A DNA stretch of 52,550 nt from assembly GCA_002811645.1 (NCBI GenBank), contig PDIP01000057.1:230225-282774 (forward strand), read 5' to 3'. Position numbers and translations under genes: made by a program. The notes below the pieces were generated by a model that had not been told where the DNA came from, did not search any database, and was given only the letters and a program-made list of their open reading frames with translations. Shown here in pieces: positions 4,192-22,406 of this stretch. This DNA comes from Corallochytrium limacisporum Hawaii. Its lineage: Eukaryota; Protista; Pluriformea. Position 1 is the first letter of the stretch; each line of letters starts with the position of its first letter.

Positions 4192-5277
4192 ATGCCTGGT
4201 ATGCGCCCAACAACCGAAAGATTCCAAGTTGACCGTGTCGACCGGTCTGGTCAGGTTGAAGACATGCGTCTCTACTGGCTCGATGCCCTGTTGGAAAGGG
4301 AACAGACCGTTCGAAGTCTGTGCAAGCAGCAGAACATCTACCAGGATCAGCCGAAGGTGATCACTGTCTTTGGTGCCACTGGTAACATTGGGCCCTACCT
4401 TTGCAAGTACCTTTCTGAAAAGTGCCCGAAGACTGAAATTCGCGCCCTGCATTTCACGTCCCCTCCACATGAGATGTGGGCCAACCTTCCAAATGTCAAG
4501 GCCGTTAAGTGTGACATGAACAGCAAGGATGACATGCGTAAGGCCCTCGAGGGAGCTGACCGTGTCTTCCTGCTCACCCGTTCCAACGAGGACTCCAGTG
4601 ATCGCGAATTGCCTGCCATTGACGTCATGGTTGAACTGGGCACCGTTCAGCATGTCGTGAAGATGGGCACCTCCAGCGGTATTACCTATCCAGAGTCCGA
4701 AGTCGGCTTTGGTCGCCATCACTACTCCATTCAGAAGAAACTGGAAGCCAGCGGGCTCTCCTGGTCCCTTATTCAAGCAAATTTTGCTATGGCTAATGCC
4801 GCTGCCAGCGCTGCCCCTACTTTGAACATGGGATTCGTGGCTCTTCCCTGGCCTGAAGGTTGCCAGGTCAGCATATCAGCCCCTCAGGATGTCGCGGAGG
4901 TCGCTGGCATCATCCTGGCCGACCCGGCGGCCCCACTGATTTACGGCAAGCGCCGTATCTTTGTCCACGGCAAGGAAAGGTTTGACGGTGAGGCGTTCGT
5001 CAAGGCGATCGCAGACTCCTTGCCCGGCAACAAAACCTTGAAGTTCCAGCGCATGGGCTTCGACGAGTGGGAACAGATGATCACTCCGATCATTGGCCCC
5101 TGGATGGCAGCTTCCATTAAGGGGGTATACAAGAACCTGGCCCTTCCTACCCAGCAGATGGACAACGTTGCGGAATTTGAAGCAATGACTGGTCGAGAGC
5201 CGACAACATTCGCAGAGTACCTGAAGGAGTTCTCCATGCAAGACGCTGCCGACCGTTTCCCCGCACTCAGGGGTTAA
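4192..5277 (+). CDS. NmrA-like / atypical SDR NAD(P)-binding oxidoreductase
   Basis: 361-aa ORF with Rossmann motif ITVFGATGNIG, ALEGADRVFLL, QDVAEVA and C-terminal MTGREPTTFAEY; about 50-aa N-terminal extension. Confidence 0.8.
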   Translation: MPGMRPTTERFQVDRVDRSGQVEDMRLYWLDALLEREQTVRSLCKQQNIYQDQPKVITVFGATGNIGPYLCKYLSEKCPKTEIRALHFTSPPHEMWANLPNVKAVKCDMNSKDDMRKALEGADRVFLLTRSNEDSSDRELPAIDVMVELGTVQHVVKMGTSSGITYPESEVGFGRHHYSIQKKLEASGLSWSLIQANFAMANAAASAAPTLNMGFVALPWPEGCQVSISAPQDVAEVAGIILADPAAPLIYGKRRIFVHGKERFDGEAFVKAIADSLPGNKTLKFQRMGFDEWEQMITPIIGPWMAASIKGVYKNLALPTQQMDNVAEFEAMTGREPTTFAEYLKEFSMQDAADRFPALRG

Positions 5278-6765
5278 AAAGATGTCATCACCAGATTATA
5301 TTGTATATTTCTTATGAGTTTACTTGTCACCCTTTGATTTGTGTCGTCTAATTCCTGTCAAGCGAATGTAGAGAAATCTGAAGTTAGCGAACCCTGATCC
5401 CTGAAAAGAAGTTGTGAAGCAAAACGTCGTCAGCAGCGCATAAAGTTTGTCCAGCATGAACAAAATATCCAGAAGAATACCGGATACTGTCCTCAGTCTC
5501 GTCATCTAAAAATCATCCGACGTCCAAAGTGCACCGTTGTGTGGGTACTTACAGCAGGTACTTACGGCATAGTAAAGGATCCGTTCCGAACTATGGGCCC
5601 TCGCAGCATGGCAAGGACCAAAGGTCTACGGCACGGAACTCGTTTTGCTTCCACTGTAAGGCCTCTCATAGCTGCGCTTCTGCTGCTCTTCCCGGAAAAG
5701 CCAAAGCTCAGCCTAGTGAAAGGCACCTCGATTTGCGCACACATTGGCAACCAGTTCTCCACGCGAACAAGTAAAAATTTGTGTTTTGAAAAACTCCGTA
5801 TATATAATATTCAGTTCCAGGTTCCACGGACTTCCTTCTGTTCTCTCCCGTCCGGTACTTAAAGTATGGGCACAGATCCGTATCACCAGATCCACGCATC
5901 AGCAACAGGTTGTAGTTCCATAAAGTTCAAGATGTTGCCGTTTGCGGCATAGTGTCTATTTACTATTGACTAAACTTAGTTATACATACTTCTCAGCCGG
6001 TTAAATTGCTGACCGACGGAGGTCCCTTACAGGCTGAGCTCACATAGTATTCTCCGGTGTTTCTGGAAACCAGGGGAAACAGAACTACGCGAGTACTATA
6101 AGCACCCGCACAGAGTTGTGGCGAACTGGCGTTTGGAACCATCCGATACGGCAGTGTTTTGGGTAGTGGGTTACTTTCTGCGGAGAAACCCGTGCAGAAC
6201 AAAAATCTTCAGCCACTGATACAGGGCCGTCCGTCTTTACAAAAGAAAACACCACTCCCGCGGCCTTCCCCCAGTTTCGCACCTTGCTTCTTCTCCGCTC
6301 GCGCCCACAGCAACAGTACTGGAGGAAATAGGTTTGTGCCCGACACATGGGGCGGGGAGTCGCGGCTCATCAGTGCTACCCAGTTGCGTCGTGCTGCGTG
6401 TACACTCTCCCTTGGTCACTCCAAAGCCCAGTAGAAACAGAAAACAGAATTCACGTTTCTCTTTGCCTTTGTAATTGGCCGATATTTTCCTACTCGTGAA
6501 AGTGGTAATCGTGACCTGCGCCATTCTCTGCAGGTGCCTGGATAATTCCCAACGTCTGCACAACTCTCTGCTGGTATTTCGGCTGTGGGACATGGCACAA
6601 TTAAGAATCTTTGATTTCTGGTCTTATTCAAGAGATGTAGGACGCAACCCGGTATAATAGAAAGAACAGGGCTTAAAAAATTGCTTCGAAGCAGTACTTG
6701 GTTCTTGTAGTCTTAAGGCCACTTGACGTTCAAGAGTAAAGAAACAGGAGTTTAGAACACCCACA

Positions 6766-7689
6766 ATGGCGTCACAAAGTGATCTGGATCGACAGATCGA
6801 GCAGTTGATGAATTGCGAACCTATCAAAGAAAGTGAAGTTAAGGCTTTATGTGCCAAAGCCCGGGAGATTCTCGTGGAAGAGAGCAATGTACAACGGGTA
6901 GACAGTCCAGTCACAATTTGTGGAGATATCCATGGTCAGTTTTATGATCTGAAGGAGCTGTTCCAAGTAGGCGGAGACGTTCCTGACACAAACTACCTGT
7001 TTATGGGAGACTTTGTTGATCGTGGGTTTTACAGTGTCGAGACACTTTTGCTCCTGCTTGCTCTAAAGGTGCGGTATCCTGACCGTATCACTTTGATTCG
7101 TGGTAATCATGAAAGCCGACAGATTACTCAGGTCTACGGATTCTATGAGGAATGTCTGCGCAAGTATGGTAGTGTCAATGTCTGGCGGTACTGCACCGAA
7201 ATCTTTGACTACCTGAGTCTTAGTGCACTAATTGACGAGAAGGTATTCTGTGTGCACGGTGGTCTGAGCCCCTCTATCAATACTCTGGATCAGATCCGTA
7301 CTCTTGACCGAAAGCAGGAAGTACCTCATGACGGTGCCATGTGCGATCTGCTGTGGAGTGATCCGGAAGACATCGAAGGTTGGGGTCTGTCCCCTCGTGG
7401 TGCTGGTTATTTGTTCGGAAGTGAAGTTGTACAGCAATTCAATTCAACAAACAACATCGACCTCATCTGCCGGGCACATCAATTGGTCATGGAAGGGTAC
7501 AAAATGATGTTCAATGACACTATTGTCACCGTGTGGTCCGCGCCAAACTATTGTTACCGGTGTGGTAATGTTGCGGCTATTTTGGAATTGGATGAGAACC
7601 TGCAGACCAACTTCAAGATATTTGAGGCAGCCCCTGGTGACGCTCGCGGAATACCTGCTAAGAAACCGCAAGCGGACTACTTCTTGTAG
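6766..7689 (+). CDS. PPP4C: Serine/threonine protein phosphatase 4 catalytic subunit
   Basis: GDIHG, GDFVDRG, RGNHE and SAPNY PPP motifs; N-terminus [30 protein letters not shown] and C-terminus ADYFL are PP4-type; 307 aa. Confidence 0.95.
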
Positions 7690-16226: not shown

Positions 16227-17447
16227 TTAGCCTTCTGCAAATACATTGTCTGTAAACTTGGAATTTCCATAGACATTGTCCATCTTCGGATCGTCCTTAA
16301 GGCTAATATCACGACTGCGTAGGGACCGTTTCACCGCATCAGAGTCATTGTGATCGATACTACGTGCAGACTTTAAGCTCTCCCTAATGTTTGCAGGGTG
16401 GTCTCCATATAATTGCTCGTCCACAATAGCAGCTACGGCTTCCTGTTGGAGGACCTCTTCGTTTTCCGCGGACGCAGAGGCAGGTTCTGCATGACCACCC
16501 CCAGCTTCCATGGCCTCGATATACCGACGTCTAGATTCTTCCATTTCTCTACCCTGTGCCTCGCGTAGTTTTTCTCTCTTCCTTGCTGCTTTGGCTTCAG
16601 CAGGTGTCATCATGGCCTGACCAACCCTCGTGGTGTGCAACTGGGGCTGCTGTGCTAAGATCTTCAAGTCAGCCGATTCCTTAGAAGGTTCCTCATAGGC
16701 TGGATACAGCTCATTGGTCATGATCGCATCATTCTCATCCCACTCTCCATTTCCCGCCGGGTGCCCTTCATCCTCGGAATTCCAATCCAAATCATGTTGA
16801 GGTTTGCCGTCCCTCAAGCTGGGATTTTTGTCAAAAAATTCGTTCAGCTTTGTAAGGATTGGAACTGCCTTACTGTTGGCTGGTACAAAGTCCAAAGTGT
16901 CGAGTGGGTTTCCGTTCACATCCAACGTTTCCAGGACTTTCAACTTGCAAAGTGCATATGGTAGAGAGCTCAATTGATTGTTCTCAAGTGACACAAACTG
17001 AAGACTCCTGCAATTCCCGATTGCCGATGGTAGCGAAATGAGTAGATTGGAAGCCGCATTCAGTACGGATAAATGGACAAGCTCACCTATTTCTTCAGGG
17101 AGATCCTGGAGTTTGTTATTTGCAACATTTAAAATTGTCAAATTCGTCACAGACCCGATGGCTGGAGGAAGGCTCACCAGTTTGTTTCGTTGCAAATATA
17201 ATTCCTCAAGATCTTCCATGAAGCCGATTTCGTATGGTAGAGTAGTTAGCTTGTTGTCTTCCAGTTCGAGAACCCGGAGCCTCTCGTCTTCGACATAACT
17301 CGGGTCAAGAACAGTCAAACCAAGTCCACTGCAGGTCAATTTTCTGCCTGAAGACTTGACTTTTGCTTTTTTGACCTCCTTGTCAAGCTTTTCTTTCGAC
17401 GGGAAGGCGCCATCTTCTCGATCTGGCCTACCTTGTTCGTTTCCCAT
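16227..17447 (-). CDS. Leucine-rich repeat protein with possible N-myristoylation and a charged/disordered C-terminus
   Basis: About 6 LxxLxLxxNxLxxLPxxIG repeats; starts MGNEQG; coiled-coil-like stretch in the C-terminal half. Confidence 0.85.
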   Translation of the reverse strand: MGNEQGRPDREDGAFPSKEKLDKEVKKAKVKSSGRKLTCSGLGLTVLDPSYVEDERLRVLELEDNKLTTLPYEIGFMEDLEELYLQRNKLVSLPPAIGSVTNLTILNVANNKLQDLPEEIGELVHLSVLNAASNLLISLPSAIGNCRSLQFVSLENNQLSSLPYALCKLKVLETLDVNGNPLDTLDFVPANSKAVPILTKLNEFFDKNPSLRDGKPQHDLDWNSEDEGHPAGNGEWDENDAIMTNELYPAYEEPSKESADLKILAQQPQLHTTRVGQAMMTPAEAKAARKREKLREAQGREMEESRRRYIEAMEAGGGHAEPASASAENEEVLQQEAVAAIVDEQLYGDHPANIRESLKSARSIDHNDSDAVKRSLRSRDISLKDDPKMDNVYGNSKFTDNVFAEG

Positions 17448-18408: not shown

Positions 18409-18891
18409 ATGCCAGCCGAAGAACCCGGGAGGATTGTACGCCTTGATGCAGATGAACAATCCAACATAGAGTCTCTCCGGTGGTTGCGCATCTGGTTCCG
18501 GCTAAATCTATTTCTGATGGTATTCGTCAGCGTACCATTCTTTGTGAGTCCAGAGTCTGCACAAAGTCGTTTAGGTCGGGGCTGTATTGATGTCTATGCC
18601 TCACGCATGGTTGCAGCTGCTCTTATATCTGTGGGGTTTCTATCGTACAGTGCAAGGTATTCTACTCTAGAGACCCTAAGGAGGGTTCTGGATTTCAAGA
18701 TCTGCTGGAGTACGCTCAGTCTGCTTGCATTACTCATGTCCTGCTGGCATGAGCCTGATGAGGTTCCAGGTGTTGTCATGGTGGGTATATTTGTACTAGC
18801 CTCCTTGGATGTGATATGGATTTACTACAGGATCGAATTGCCATATTTGTTTGCTGAAGGTGCCAGGAGAAACAACCATAAAGCAATGTAG
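18409..18891 (+). CDS. Small multi-pass (about 4 TM) membrane protein of unknown function
   Basis: 160-aa ATG ORF with four hydrophobic segments; SRMVAAAL, KICWS and WIYYR motifs. Confidence 0.7.
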   Translation: MPAEEPGRIVRLDADEQSNIESLRWLRIWFRLNLFLMVFVSVPFFVSPESAQSRLGRGCIDVYASRMVAAALISVGFLSYSARYSTLETLRRVLDFKICWSTLSLLALLMSCWHEPDEVPGVVMVGIFVLASLDVIWIYYRIELPYLFAEGARRNNHKAM

Positions 18892-18903: not shown

Positions 18904-19416
18904 CTATGTAAAATCCCTCTTTCCTCCGGTCTTTTGAACCACTTTGATGTCTGAAATGATCATATCGTGTGACATTGCCTTGCACATGTCATAGATGGTA
19001 AGGGCAGCACAGGATACTGCCTGAAGGGCCTCCATCTCTACCCCAGTTGTATACGTTGTCTTCGTCTCGGCCGAAATCGCAATTGTGCTTGATTCTTCGT
19101 CAGTATCGAATTCCACCTTTACAGAAGACAGAGGAATCTGATGACAAAGGGGGATCGAAGAGAAGGTCATCTTGGCGGCATTGATACCAGCAATTTTGGC
19201 AACAGTGAAAACATCGCCCTTTGCAATTTCTTTTTGTTTCAAAGCGGTCATCACATTAGAAGGTACCTTGATTGTCCCTATCGCTCTGGCTGTCCGCAAT
19301 GTTGCTTTCTTGGTAGAAACATCTACCATAGTCGCCTTTCCTTCAGAGTCCAAATGGCTGAAGCCGCTTGTGTACGTCCTTATCTGGTTTCGAGGGAGTG
19401 CACTATGTCTCAACAT
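18904..19416 (-). CDS. MOCS1B: MoaC/MOCS1B cyclic pyranopterin monophosphate synthase; frame open upstream to about 19503
   Basis: SHLDSEGKATMVDVSTK, KGDVF, IPLCHQIPL, TGVEMEAL, TIYDMCKA, KTGGK. First ATG 19416 is followed by an Arg/Ser-rich presequence-like stretch. Confidence 0.93.
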   Translation of the reverse strand: MLRHSALPRNQIRTYTSGFSHLDSEGKATMVDVSTKKATLRTARAIGTIKVPSNVMTALKQKEIAKGDVFTVAKIAGINAAKMTFSSIPLCHQIPLSSVKVEFDTDEESSTIAISAETKTTYTTGVEMEALQAVSCAALTIYDMCKAMSHDMIISDIKVVQKTGGKRDFT

Positions 19417-19493
19417 CAAAGGAGCAAGGAGGGGTTTATCACTGTCAGTCAAGTTTTTCGTATCGAACCTCGTCAGAGTGTCTAAGAATGAGC

Positions 19494-19603
19494 CTGTTAT
19501 AGCTTAATATATACAAATCATTTCATATTGTCAATACACATCGTCCACTACCCTCCAATGGTTACCATGGGTCGATTCCTTGTCTCTTTTAGTCGAAACA
19601 TAC
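19494..19603 (-). other. Predicted alternative/retained intron removing the MoaA stop codon and fusing MoaA to MoaC
   Basis: CAT GGA G|GTATGT donor at 19603. Acceptors ATAACAG| (19494) and TTCTTAG| (19482) are both phase 1 and in frame with MoaC. Confidence 0.6.
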
Positions 19604-20687
19604 CTCCATGTCGTGCTTTCTTTCGAAGAAGTGCTTCGCGAACCAGCTCCTCAATGTCATCATTACTAGCTCCTTCCCTCATCAAATTTCTTAAGCTTAC
19701 CTCCCCATTGTCAAAGAGGCAGACTTTGATGTTTCCATCTGAAGTGATGCGCAGCCTGTTGCATGTTCCGCAAAAGTTGTTGCTCATAGACGTAATGAAC
19801 CCAAGCGTACCCACGTAATCATTGATCTTGTAGTGTTTGGTGGTGTCATTCGGTCCATCAACGGATCTCTCTACCCTTCCATATTTCTGCTTCAAGCGAT
19901 CCACGACGGTTGTGTAGTCAAGGAACCGGTCGAAGGACCATCGATTCCCATCGAAAGGCATGAACTCAATGAATCGAAGGACAATCGGATACGTACGCAT
20001 GAATCTTTCTACAAAGTCCTCAACTTCATCATCATTGACATCCCGCATCAAAACGCAATTTACTTTAGTATCCATTCCCATAGAAACACACTCATCAATG
20101 TTTCCCAGCACGCGCGCTAAACCGGCACGCCTCGTGATATTCCGGAAGCGCTCCTCTTGCAATGTATCAAGACTTATGTTAATTGAGTCCAATCCAGCCA
20201 TTCGAAGACTGTGGAGCTTCATAGGACTGCAGTATGCGTTACTAGTTATCGCCACATGTTCAATTTCTGTGTTTGCTTTGACCTCGGAAATGAGATCAGC
20301 TATCCGGGGGTAAATGGTTGGCTCACCACCTGTTAGTCGAAGTTTTCTTACACCAAGGTTGCTGAATACCTTGGTCAGCCGAATCAATTCTTCAAAAGTA
20401 AGTACTTCTGCCGGTGGGGTCAATTGCACACCCTCCGCTGGCATGCAGTACTGACAACGCAAGTTGCAACGCTCCGTGAGGCTGATGCGCAGATAGTCAT
20501 GCTTTCTCATGAATGAATCAAAAAGTGGCTTGCTTCCGCCTTCCGTTAAAGTGTTGACTTTGTCATTGTCTTCAGTTGGTGCAGTCAGTTGTGACTGTGC
20601 TCGCGATGAGTAATAACGCTTGCAGGGTGCAGAGCGCCAGATTCGGGTACGCCGAATCGTTTCCGGTGCTCTCACTATAGACCGCAT
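19548..20687 (-). CDS. MOCS1A: MoaA/MOCS1A radical-SAM GTP 3',8-cyclase
   Basis: YLRISLTERCNLRCQYC (CxxxCxxC), RLTGGEP, FCGTCNRLR...KVCLF, terminal NRPMVTIGG double glycine; Arg-rich mitochondrial-type presequence from ATG 20687. Confidence 0.95.
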   Translation of the reverse strand: MRSIVRAPETIRRTRIWRSAPCKRYYSSRAQSQLTAPTEDNDKVNTLTEGGSKPLFDSFMRKHDYLRISLTERCNLRCQYCMPAEGVQLTPPAEVLTFEELIRLTKVFSNLGVRKLRLTGGEPTIYPRIADLISEVKANTEIEHVAITSNAYCSPMKLHSLRMAGLDSINISLDTLQEERFRNITRRAGLARVLGNIDECVSMGMDTKVNCVLMRDVNDDEVEDFVERFMRTYPIVLRFIEFMPFDGNRWSFDRFLDYTTVVDRLKQKYGRVERSVDGPNDTTKHYKINDYVGTLGFITSMSNNFCGTCNRLRITSDGNIKVCLFDNGEVSLRNLMREGASNDDIEELVREALLRKKARHGGMFRLKETRNRPMVTIGG

Positions 20688-21460: not shown

Positions 21461-22406
21461 ATGGCAGCCAAGACATTAATGACCACGACATCAAATGCAC
21501 AGTGGACAAGGCTCAATGCCAGTTTGATGAGTCTGTTTCAACAGAAGAGCAAGATGGCTTTGTCTCAAAACAAAGACGTGATGAAGGACATTGAACTCTT
21601 AAACCATGCGGTAGCGTAAGTATACAACGGCAGTTTTGCACAGGAATGGACTGTTAAAAGGCAGGAATACCAACGGATGATTTTCATTTCTTATTTATGT
21701 ACAACTATTTTCCGTACAGGGATCTTGCTTCAGACGCAGACATGAGAACCAAACTTCCCTCACTAATACGGGGCCAAATGCTTCTCAAGGGCATGATTAT
21801 TCTGCGTGAGCTAGGGTTACGTGTAAGTACTATTTCCACTGTCTTCTTGATATCTTCTAATGGAGGGGTGGCGAACTGATGTTCATGCCGGCCGCTTCCG
21901 CTCCTGGAACTAGGCAACTAACTAAAAGCGACTTTCTCTCTTTTCTCTGGGTCTTTTCGGTATCACAGGATTTGCAAGGCTCTGCGCTTCTCCAAAGGCT
22001 TGCGGAAATTTGGAAACTCTTCTTTTCACATATACTAATCACTCTTGAAGCAGCATTTCAACCAATTCTTACAGATCCAGAAATTAAACTGCGGCATTGG
22101 GCACTGGTGGCCTTTAGAGATCATGTTATCCTAGGGGATTCTAATATCAGAGAGACATTCGAAGATGCCTTGAGTCAAGAGCGCATCAGGCCACCTGCTA
22201 TCAGTCATATGCTGTTAATGTTACAGAGTGTACGAACCGGATGTGACAAAGAACAGATTGTCAATGCCATGACCTCGTTCATCATGCCTTACCTCGGATT
22301 TTACACAGAAGATCCCAGCAGGTTCGGCTCTTACGAGAGCAAGCTTGATGTCATGCAGGATAGAATGGCCCCAATTCAATCCGTTGAAGACCTTGATATG
22401 CTATGA
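21461..22406 (+). CDS. PRR5: PRR5/Protor (HbrB/Bit61 family) TORC2-associated protein; exons 21461-21615, 21720-21822, 21969-22406 (231 aa)
   Basis: Spliced product has WTRLNASLMSLFQ, LLKGMIILRE, LLQRLAEIWKLFFS, ALVAFRD, PPAISHMLLMLQSV and PYLG, collinear with recalled PRR5 motifs (LLTKGMVILRD, LAETWDFFF, PPAIVQMLLVLQGV, PYLG). Both introns are GTAAGT...CAG and preserve frame. Confidence 0.85.
21616..21719 (+). other. PRR5 intron 1 (phase 2, 104 nt)
   Basis: GC|GTAAGT ... pyrimidine-rich ... CCGTACAG|G; removes the in-frame TAA. Confidence 0.8.
21823..21968 (+). other. PRR5 intron 2 (phase 0, 146 nt)
   Basis: CGT|GTAAGT ... ACTAAC branch ... polypyrimidine tract ... ATCACAG|GAT. Confidence 0.82.

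Follow-up and report, generated by a model that had tools for sequence, protein, structure and literature searches.

Corallochytrium limacisporum probably produces MoaA and MoaC, the two enzymes predicted to carry out the first step of molybdenum-cofactor biosynthesis (conversion of GTP into cPMP, cyclic pyranopterin monophosphate), from one transcription unit of the MOCS1/nit-7 type. The locus occupies positions 18904 to 20687, on the minus strand, of a 52,550-nucleotide (nt) stretch of contig PDIP01000057.1 (assembly GCA_002811645.1), which is referred to here as the window. Judged from the sequence, partial splicing of a single short candidate intron would give two products, MoaA and a MoaA-MoaC fusion. 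The open reading frames (ORFs), their family membership, their single copy, the geometry of the splice signals and the homology of the donor position were all read directly. An initial annotation of this DNA had proposed that a switch like that of animal MOCS1 operates here and may predate animals. The anatomy of the locus fits the first proposal, as do the donor position, the single gene copy, the in-frame AGs and the poor context of the first MoaC ATG; the public gene models, which are separate, do not. The second proposal is not new because nit-7 of Neurospora crassa uses the same switch between a retained intron and a spliced fusion, which already implies an origin outside animals (PMC7232280).

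The features of the locus, all on the minus strand, are as follows.

19548..20687 (-): MoaA (GTP 3',8-cyclase) ORF, 379 aa, read from unspliced RNA; identified by Pfam and alignment.
19604..20687 (-): first exon proposed for the fusion mRNA, with MoaA residues 1-361 plus base 1 of codon 362.
19598..19606 (-): candidate 5' splice site GAG/GTATGT (the slash marks the exon end), phase 1 in Gly362 of R-H-G-G-M-F.
19548..19603 (-): C-terminal tail of MoaA, from the remainder of residue 362 to residue 379 with the terminal Gly-Gly, and stop; translated only if the candidate intron is retained.
19482..19547 (-): spacer, the non-coding part of the candidate intron, with stops in the MoaC frame up to the TAA at 19506-19504.
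19482..19504 (-): cluster of candidate AG acceptors (G at 19503, 19494 and 19482), all of which fit the phase-1 donor.
19417..19493 (-): candidate linker in open frame, about 26 codons, acidic and ATG-free, coding only if spliced.
19360..19416 (-): presequence-like segment of 19 residues from the Met at ATG 19416, read by eye.
18904..19359 (-): MoaC catalytic domain and stop (Pfam MoaC), including the S-H-L-D-x-x-G-x-A strand before MVDVS.

The upstream gene encodes a complete MoaA. Its ORF runs from the ATG at 20687 to a TAG at 19550-19548 and has the length of 379 aa and the C-terminal residues MVTIGG first reported for it. Pfam detects Radical_SAM (4.4e-33) and Mob_synth_C (1.9e-37), and the cysteines C74, C78 and C81 of the CxxxCxxC motif are invariant in the homologue alignment, as expected of a radical SAM enzyme. 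Both Cys clusters are present, and the N-terminus carries an Arg-rich, presequence-like stretch. Its identity to MoaA of animals, fungi, plants and bacteria is 46-52% in the alignment and up to 55% in a wider search; the protein search returned no non-self match above 55% identity, that is, no close relative for a conservation test.

The residues NRPMVTIGG stand directly before the stop of MoaA, so that the chain ends in Gly-Gly, and N371, R372, P373, M374, I377 and G378 are each at least 90% conserved in the homologue alignment. The MoaA and MoaC domains are each present in a single copy in the 24.1-Mb assembly. Because this single-copy MoaA keeps its conserved tail and Gly-Gly inside the candidate intron, retention must occur and any splicing must be alternative. 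At the other end of the gene, a six-codon upstream ORF (uORF), from an ATG at 20695-20693 to a TAG at 20677-20675 (-), runs across the MoaA start codon in another frame and could damp MoaA translation if it lies inside the 5' untranslated region (UTR).

The downstream gene is a full-length MoaC, the cPMP synthase known as MOCS1B. The Pfam MoaC profile matches over 18922-19329 (4.7e-53; profile positions 1-136 of 136), the motifs PLCH and YDMCK are both seen, and the stop lies at 18906-18904. The strand S-H-L-D-x-x-G-x-A aligns with the L-[ST]-H-[VI]-[DN] of known fusions. The tandem arrangement was described earlier with a gap of about 130 nt; we count 131 nt from the MoaA stop to the first ATG in the MoaC frame (19416), on the same strand. 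The segment that starts at this Met contains three Arg, one His, no acidic residues and an R-T-Y/T (R-x-Y/T) motif. Such a segment might direct targeting and cleavage from within the fusion, as in human MOCS1AB, or might form the N-terminus of a MoaC made separately. When the MoaC exon was searched against metagenomes, all of the 80 loci found were bacterial-like (best identity 55%) and none was a corallochytrean relative. Beyond the gene, the MoaC stop (18906-18904, -) lies 12 nt from the stop of a convergent 160-aa ORF with four transmembrane segments (18409-18891, +), and each 3' UTR must therefore enter the coding sequence of the other gene.

The donor GAG/GTATGT, first noticed at H-G-G/M-F, has its exon end at 19604, in phase 1 and 18 codons before the MoaA stop, and it is the sole strong donor within the last 30 MoaA codons. 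The last Gly codon (GGG TAG) has no GT, so no strong donor remains apart from that at 19603. Two further sites, ATG/GTAACC at 19565 (phase 0) and AGG/GTAGTG at 19551 (phase 2), have an in-frame AG partner downstream and were rejected as weak for their poor positions +4 to +6. On the acceptor side, the initial annotation named the AGs at 19494 and 19482; both do restore the MoaC frame, but the list was incomplete, as a third in-frame AG lies at 19503 (TAA/G). The first three AGs after the MoaA stop are thus all frame-compatible, and later AGs are incompatible except for one within the conserved N-terminal strand of MoaC (G at 19341). The MoaC frame is closed by the TAA at 19506-19504, opens exactly at the first AG and continues without a stop into MoaC, as had been stated for the two acceptors first named.

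In silico, these sites give in-frame donor/acceptor pairs that remove both the Gly-Gly and the stop. The candidate intron measures 110 nt with the acceptor at 19494 or 122 nt with that at 19482. Fusion lengths were obtained by arithmetic, the exons having been searched separately: they come to 560, 557 and 553 aa for acceptors 19503, 19494 and 19482, with Ala, Gly or Asp as the junction codon, and the value of 557 aa reproduces the earlier estimate. Codon usage in the 26 linker codons is weakly coding-like (likelihood ratio about 5). Within the spacer are three short uORF ATGs, two copies of TGTA and a TATATAT at 19507-19513, together with the branch-point-like words TTGAC (19534-19530) and CTATAAC (19502-19496) and a short pyrimidine run. 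A sigma-70 scan match in the spacer (TTGACA-17-TATATT) was dismissed, as this is a nuclear eukaryotic locus and total hits equal the shuffle expectation.

A comparison of the donor position with animal and other holozoan genes had been suggested as a check, and it shows that the Mocs1 DNA of Drosophila busckii has a constitutive intron, CAT GCG G/GTACGT (H-A-G/M), which shares its Gly codon and its phase (phase 1) with the candidate donor. In addition, the NCBI fusion isoforms D. guanche X2 and D. navojoa X1 leave MoaA at the codon matching Gly362. The donor is therefore homologous in position to one used in animals, both as an intron in D. busckii and as an exit point in Drosophila fusion isoforms.

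Taken together, these features suggest the following mode of action. If the RNA keeps the intron, which starts at 19603 and ends at 19494, 19482 or possibly 19503, MoaA would be read to its essential Gly-Gly, giving an active protein of 379 aa. Splicing would instead delete the stop together with the 18 C-terminal residues of MoaA, and the frame would pass through a linker of about 45 residues into MoaC. The MoaA part of the resulting fusion (about 553-560 aa) would be inactive and serve as a carrier. The presequence-like stretch of the linker may be cleavable by the mitochondrial processing peptidase, which would release mature MoaC in mitochondria. We infer that splicing occurs, that it is partial, and that import and cleavage follow.

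Introns are rare in this genome, and a few that could be inspected provide a standard for the candidate. C. limacisporum is reported to have a 24.1-Mb genome with 0.0 introns per kb of coding sequence and a depleted repertoire of serine/arginine-rich (SR) proteins and exon junction complex (EJC) factors (PMC5560861), and the window is nearly intron-free, in line with this report. An HbrB/PRR5-like gene with three exons (21461-22406, +) lies 2 kb from the MoaA/MoaC locus; its last exon covers the Pfam HbrB profile only from position 75 onwards, so the exons before it are needed as well. Both of its introns have the form GTAAGT...CAG, at 21616-21719 (104 nt) and 21823-21968 (146 nt), sizes near that of the candidate. 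The HBS1 locus, elsewhere in this genome (G000:C186, 1906-2003 of the stretch read), has an intron-like GTACGT...TACTAAC...CAG with a perfect TACTAAC box and a pyrimidine-rich end between the HBS1_N and GTPase ORFs, and the HBS1_N ORF stops upstream of the GTACGT.

Several observations weigh against a splicing switch. The candidate intron is weaker than the three real introns inspected, with GTATGT rather than GTAAGT, no branch point of the TACTAAC type and a short pyrimidine tract; such signals would also suit an intron that is retained part of the time. The loss of SR and EJC factors reported for the species (PMC5560861) points the same way. The donor hexamer itself coincides with the codons GGT-ATG-TTT of the conserved G-M-F, and since a GGT codon for Gly forces GTATGT at this site, the frequency of GGT among Gly codons of window genes (0.36) sets how readily it arises. 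In the fungus Mucor flavus the annotated fusion relies on a different donor even though GGT ATG TTT is present there as well. The TGTA and TATATAT words of the spacer resemble ordinary gene-flank DNA of the window. Finally, the public models from the locus (EukProt) are a separate MoaA of 379 aa and a MoaC of 141 aa, and no fusion protein of 208-663 aa from C. limacisporum was found in the protein collection. The 141-aa model does appear to be truncated at its N-terminus, without the conserved strand or targeting sequence, because S-H-L-D-x-x-G-x-A precedes its MVDVS start. That start (ATG 19329) was probably mis-called on account of its good context, with A at -3 and G at +4.

The splice pattern was also compared with chance. 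GTATGT occurs in the window at the level expected by chance (20 found, 18.3 expected). Given the frequency of GGT and the finding that 31% of intergenic windows contain an open stretch of 29 codons, the minimal pattern on which the initial annotation relied would arise by chance at about 10%, or roughly one tandem pair in 10. Requiring an A at -2 lowers the chance of the donor to about 0.09, and the first three AGs would all be in a compatible phase with a chance of about 0.04. The full pattern, in which three of three AGs are in phase and the -2 A is present, has a chance of about 0.1%, a value that includes features noticed post hoc.

Motifs in the flanks of window genes are relevant to the alternatives. 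With 13 copies against 2.2 expected, TATATAT is about sixfold enriched in the window; its copies lie in non-coding spacers. TGTA occurs in the 3' flanks of 13 of 18 window genes, compared with 30% of random windows, and is equally enriched in 5' flanks (8.3 vs 10.6 per kb). TTTATG, which reads CATAAA in convergent pairs, is found six times in 1.8 kb of 3' flanks (18 genes), whereas 5' flanks have 0.56 copies per kb and the overall density is 0.28 per kb; it is absent from the MoaA/MoaC spacer. TTTATG and TGTA are candidate 3'-end signals. The TGTA and TATATAT of the spacer could accordingly represent a MoaA 3'-end signal, a TATA-like element for MoaC, or merely non-coding composition. A further motif, GGTAYT, occurs about twice as often in the window as expected (64 copies against 33.6), but has no minus-strand copy between 19450 and 20360; it was rejected both as an explanation of the donor and as a MoaC promoter.

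The main rival to the splicing switch, which we consider rather unlikely, is that the locus produces two separate mRNAs. MoaA RNA would be cleaved and polyadenylated in the spacer, and a minimal promoter, situated within the spacer or immediately upstream, would drive MoaC, to be translated from ATG 19416 with a mitochondrial presequence of its own; the splice-like signals would then reflect the G-M-F codons and chance. The enriched TATATAT (19513-19507) is placed suitably for this, 91-97 nt before ATG 19416 with no ATG between and a start predicted near 19480, and the residues from that Met look like a textbook presequence. The 3'-flank enrichment of TGTA, the two proteins of the public annotation, the calling of MoaA and MoaC as two tandem genes in Salpingoeca rosetta and the chance of about one in 10 for the minimal splice pattern also speak for this reading. 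However, ATG 19416 has a T at -3, a base found there in none of 14 window gene starts (13 of which have a purine), and the promoter would have to fit a spacer of 131 nt when the other promoter-bearing spacers of the window measure about 660-1500 nt. The enriched GGTAYT motif has no copy nearby. Separate mRNAs also leave to coincidence that all three proximal AGs are in frame, that the first of these coincides exactly with the opening of the frame, and that the donor stands at the homologous position of an animal intron.

A second possibility modifies the splicing switch rather than replacing it, and its probability is counted within that reading. Here the fusion would still arise by splicing, and the MoaA-only mRNA would end at a poly(A) site inside the intron. 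The 3' half of the intron contains two TGTA and one TATATAT, like the 3' flanks of the genes at 4192-5277 and 16227-17447. TGTA is, however, as enriched in 5' as in 3' flanks and so may only mark non-coding DNA, and the word specific to 3' flanks, TTTATG, is missing from the spacer; we regard this variant as unlikely.

Far less probable is an unspliced bicistronic mRNA from which MoaC is translated by reinitiation, leaky scanning or internal entry. In humans the type I RNA of MOCS1 is indeed bicistronic, but its second ORF is untranslated (bioRxiv 10.1101/429183), and scanning ribosomes should not reach ATG 19416 here because the MoaA ORF is long and has many internal ATGs, with three uORFs following in the spacer. 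Constitutive splicing to the fusion alone, for which we found no specific support, is the least probable of all, as the single-copy MoaA keeps within the would-be intron a conserved tail whose Gly-Gly is reported to be essential for activity (bioRxiv 10.1101/429183; PMC7232280).

A switch by partial splicing thus remains the preferred reading of the locus. Humans, flies and Neurospora are already known to use this mechanism, and C. limacisporum likely adds a further example; there is no new mechanism here for molybdenum-cofactor biology. The interest lies in the survival of an intron, at the donor position of animals, in an almost intron-free holozoan. If confirmed in RNA, the MOCS1/nit-7 switch would extend to a third opisthokont lineage, the Teretosporea, and the shared donor position would favour a switch that arose before animals and fungi diverged, rather than convergence. 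It is a reasonable suggestion that the candidate intron was kept despite genome-wide intron loss; it would then have been kept for a coding function while nearly all others were lost. The public gene models would also be corrected, notably the 141-aa MoaC that has neither the conserved N-terminal strand nor a targeting signal.

A broader hypothesis may be put forward tentatively. The genome shed almost all of its introns and part of its machinery for splicing and nonsense-mediated decay, and the few surviving coding introns might be those that make two proteins by partial retention. The MOCS1 switch would then be an ancient opisthokont trait, reduced here to its minimum: a single weak intron that has the MoaA tail as its 5' third and may choose between splicing and intronic polyadenylation. 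With the HBS1/SKI7 intron as a second case, Corallochytrium would be a natural experiment on which introns are indispensable. We consider this possible but doubtful.

Comparison with known systems, which at the DNA level covered S. rosetta, M. flavus and D. busckii, places the locus among several related designs. The same two enzymes and chemistry are encoded in plants by separate genes, Cnx2 and Cnx3 (PMC7232280), and in bacteria by the operon genes moaA and moaC, in neither case with a splicing switch. In S. rosetta (6500-7500 of the stretch read), MoaA and MoaC are in tandem on one strand, about 570 nt apart. The codons of its H-A-G-M, GCA GGC ATG, contain no GT; a GTGAGT about 50 nt after the MoaA stop suggests an intron starting in the MoaA 3' UTR.

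Mucor flavus, sponge, ant and mosquito likewise have the two domains in tandem and a phase-1 donor in the region of the MoaA stop; their fusions leave MoaA at the last Gly codon. In M. flavus the donor is GGA G/GTTAAA in that codon, so that splicing takes away no more than the final Gly and the stop. Drosophila Mocs1 combines both positions. In addition to the real intron at the upstream Gly codon, D. busckii carries another phase-1 donor, GGC G/GTTAGT, at the last Gly codon, with the stop inside the intron, whereas C. limacisporum has no GT at the latter site.

Human MOCS1 has the same order of MoaA ORF and MoaC ORF, with the Gly-Gly tail and stop in an alternatively removed segment and a fusion that lacks the Gly-Gly. 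As described in bioRxiv 10.1101/429183, which cites Gray & Nicholls 2000, the type I transcript is bicistronic and gives MOCS1A, and types II and III give MOCS1AB. Type III drops the whole of exon 9, with the Gly-Gly and stop, and type II removes 15 nt (bioRxiv 10.1101/429183); the predicted C. limacisporum fusion corresponds to type III, in that the whole tail is removed. The architecture differs. The human gene has ten exons and the tail is exon 9 between two introns, removed by exon skipping, while the C. limacisporum candidate is one intron subject to retention, the 5' part of which is the coding sequence of the MoaA tail itself rather than a separate exon. The human MOCS1AB linker, which carries a mitochondrial signal and cleavage site (bioRxiv 10.1101/429183), is 95 aa long, compared with about 45 aa predicted here.

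A formal counterpart is nit-7 of N. crassa, which has two exons and one intron. Its unspliced RNA gives NIT-7A, with the Gly-Gly and stop encoded by the intron, and its spliced RNA gives NIT-7AB, as demonstrated experimentally; NIT-7B is released after mitochondrial import (PMC7232280), which depends on an N-terminal signal. The nit-7 donor lies at the Gly-Gly codons (nt 1460 of a 1467-nt ORF) and only the Gly-Gly is removed, whereas the C. limacisporum donor is 18 codons upstream, and the nit-7 intron is longer (237 nt compared with 110-122 nt). In other respects the retained-intron design predicted for C. limacisporum is formally identical to that proven in the fungus.

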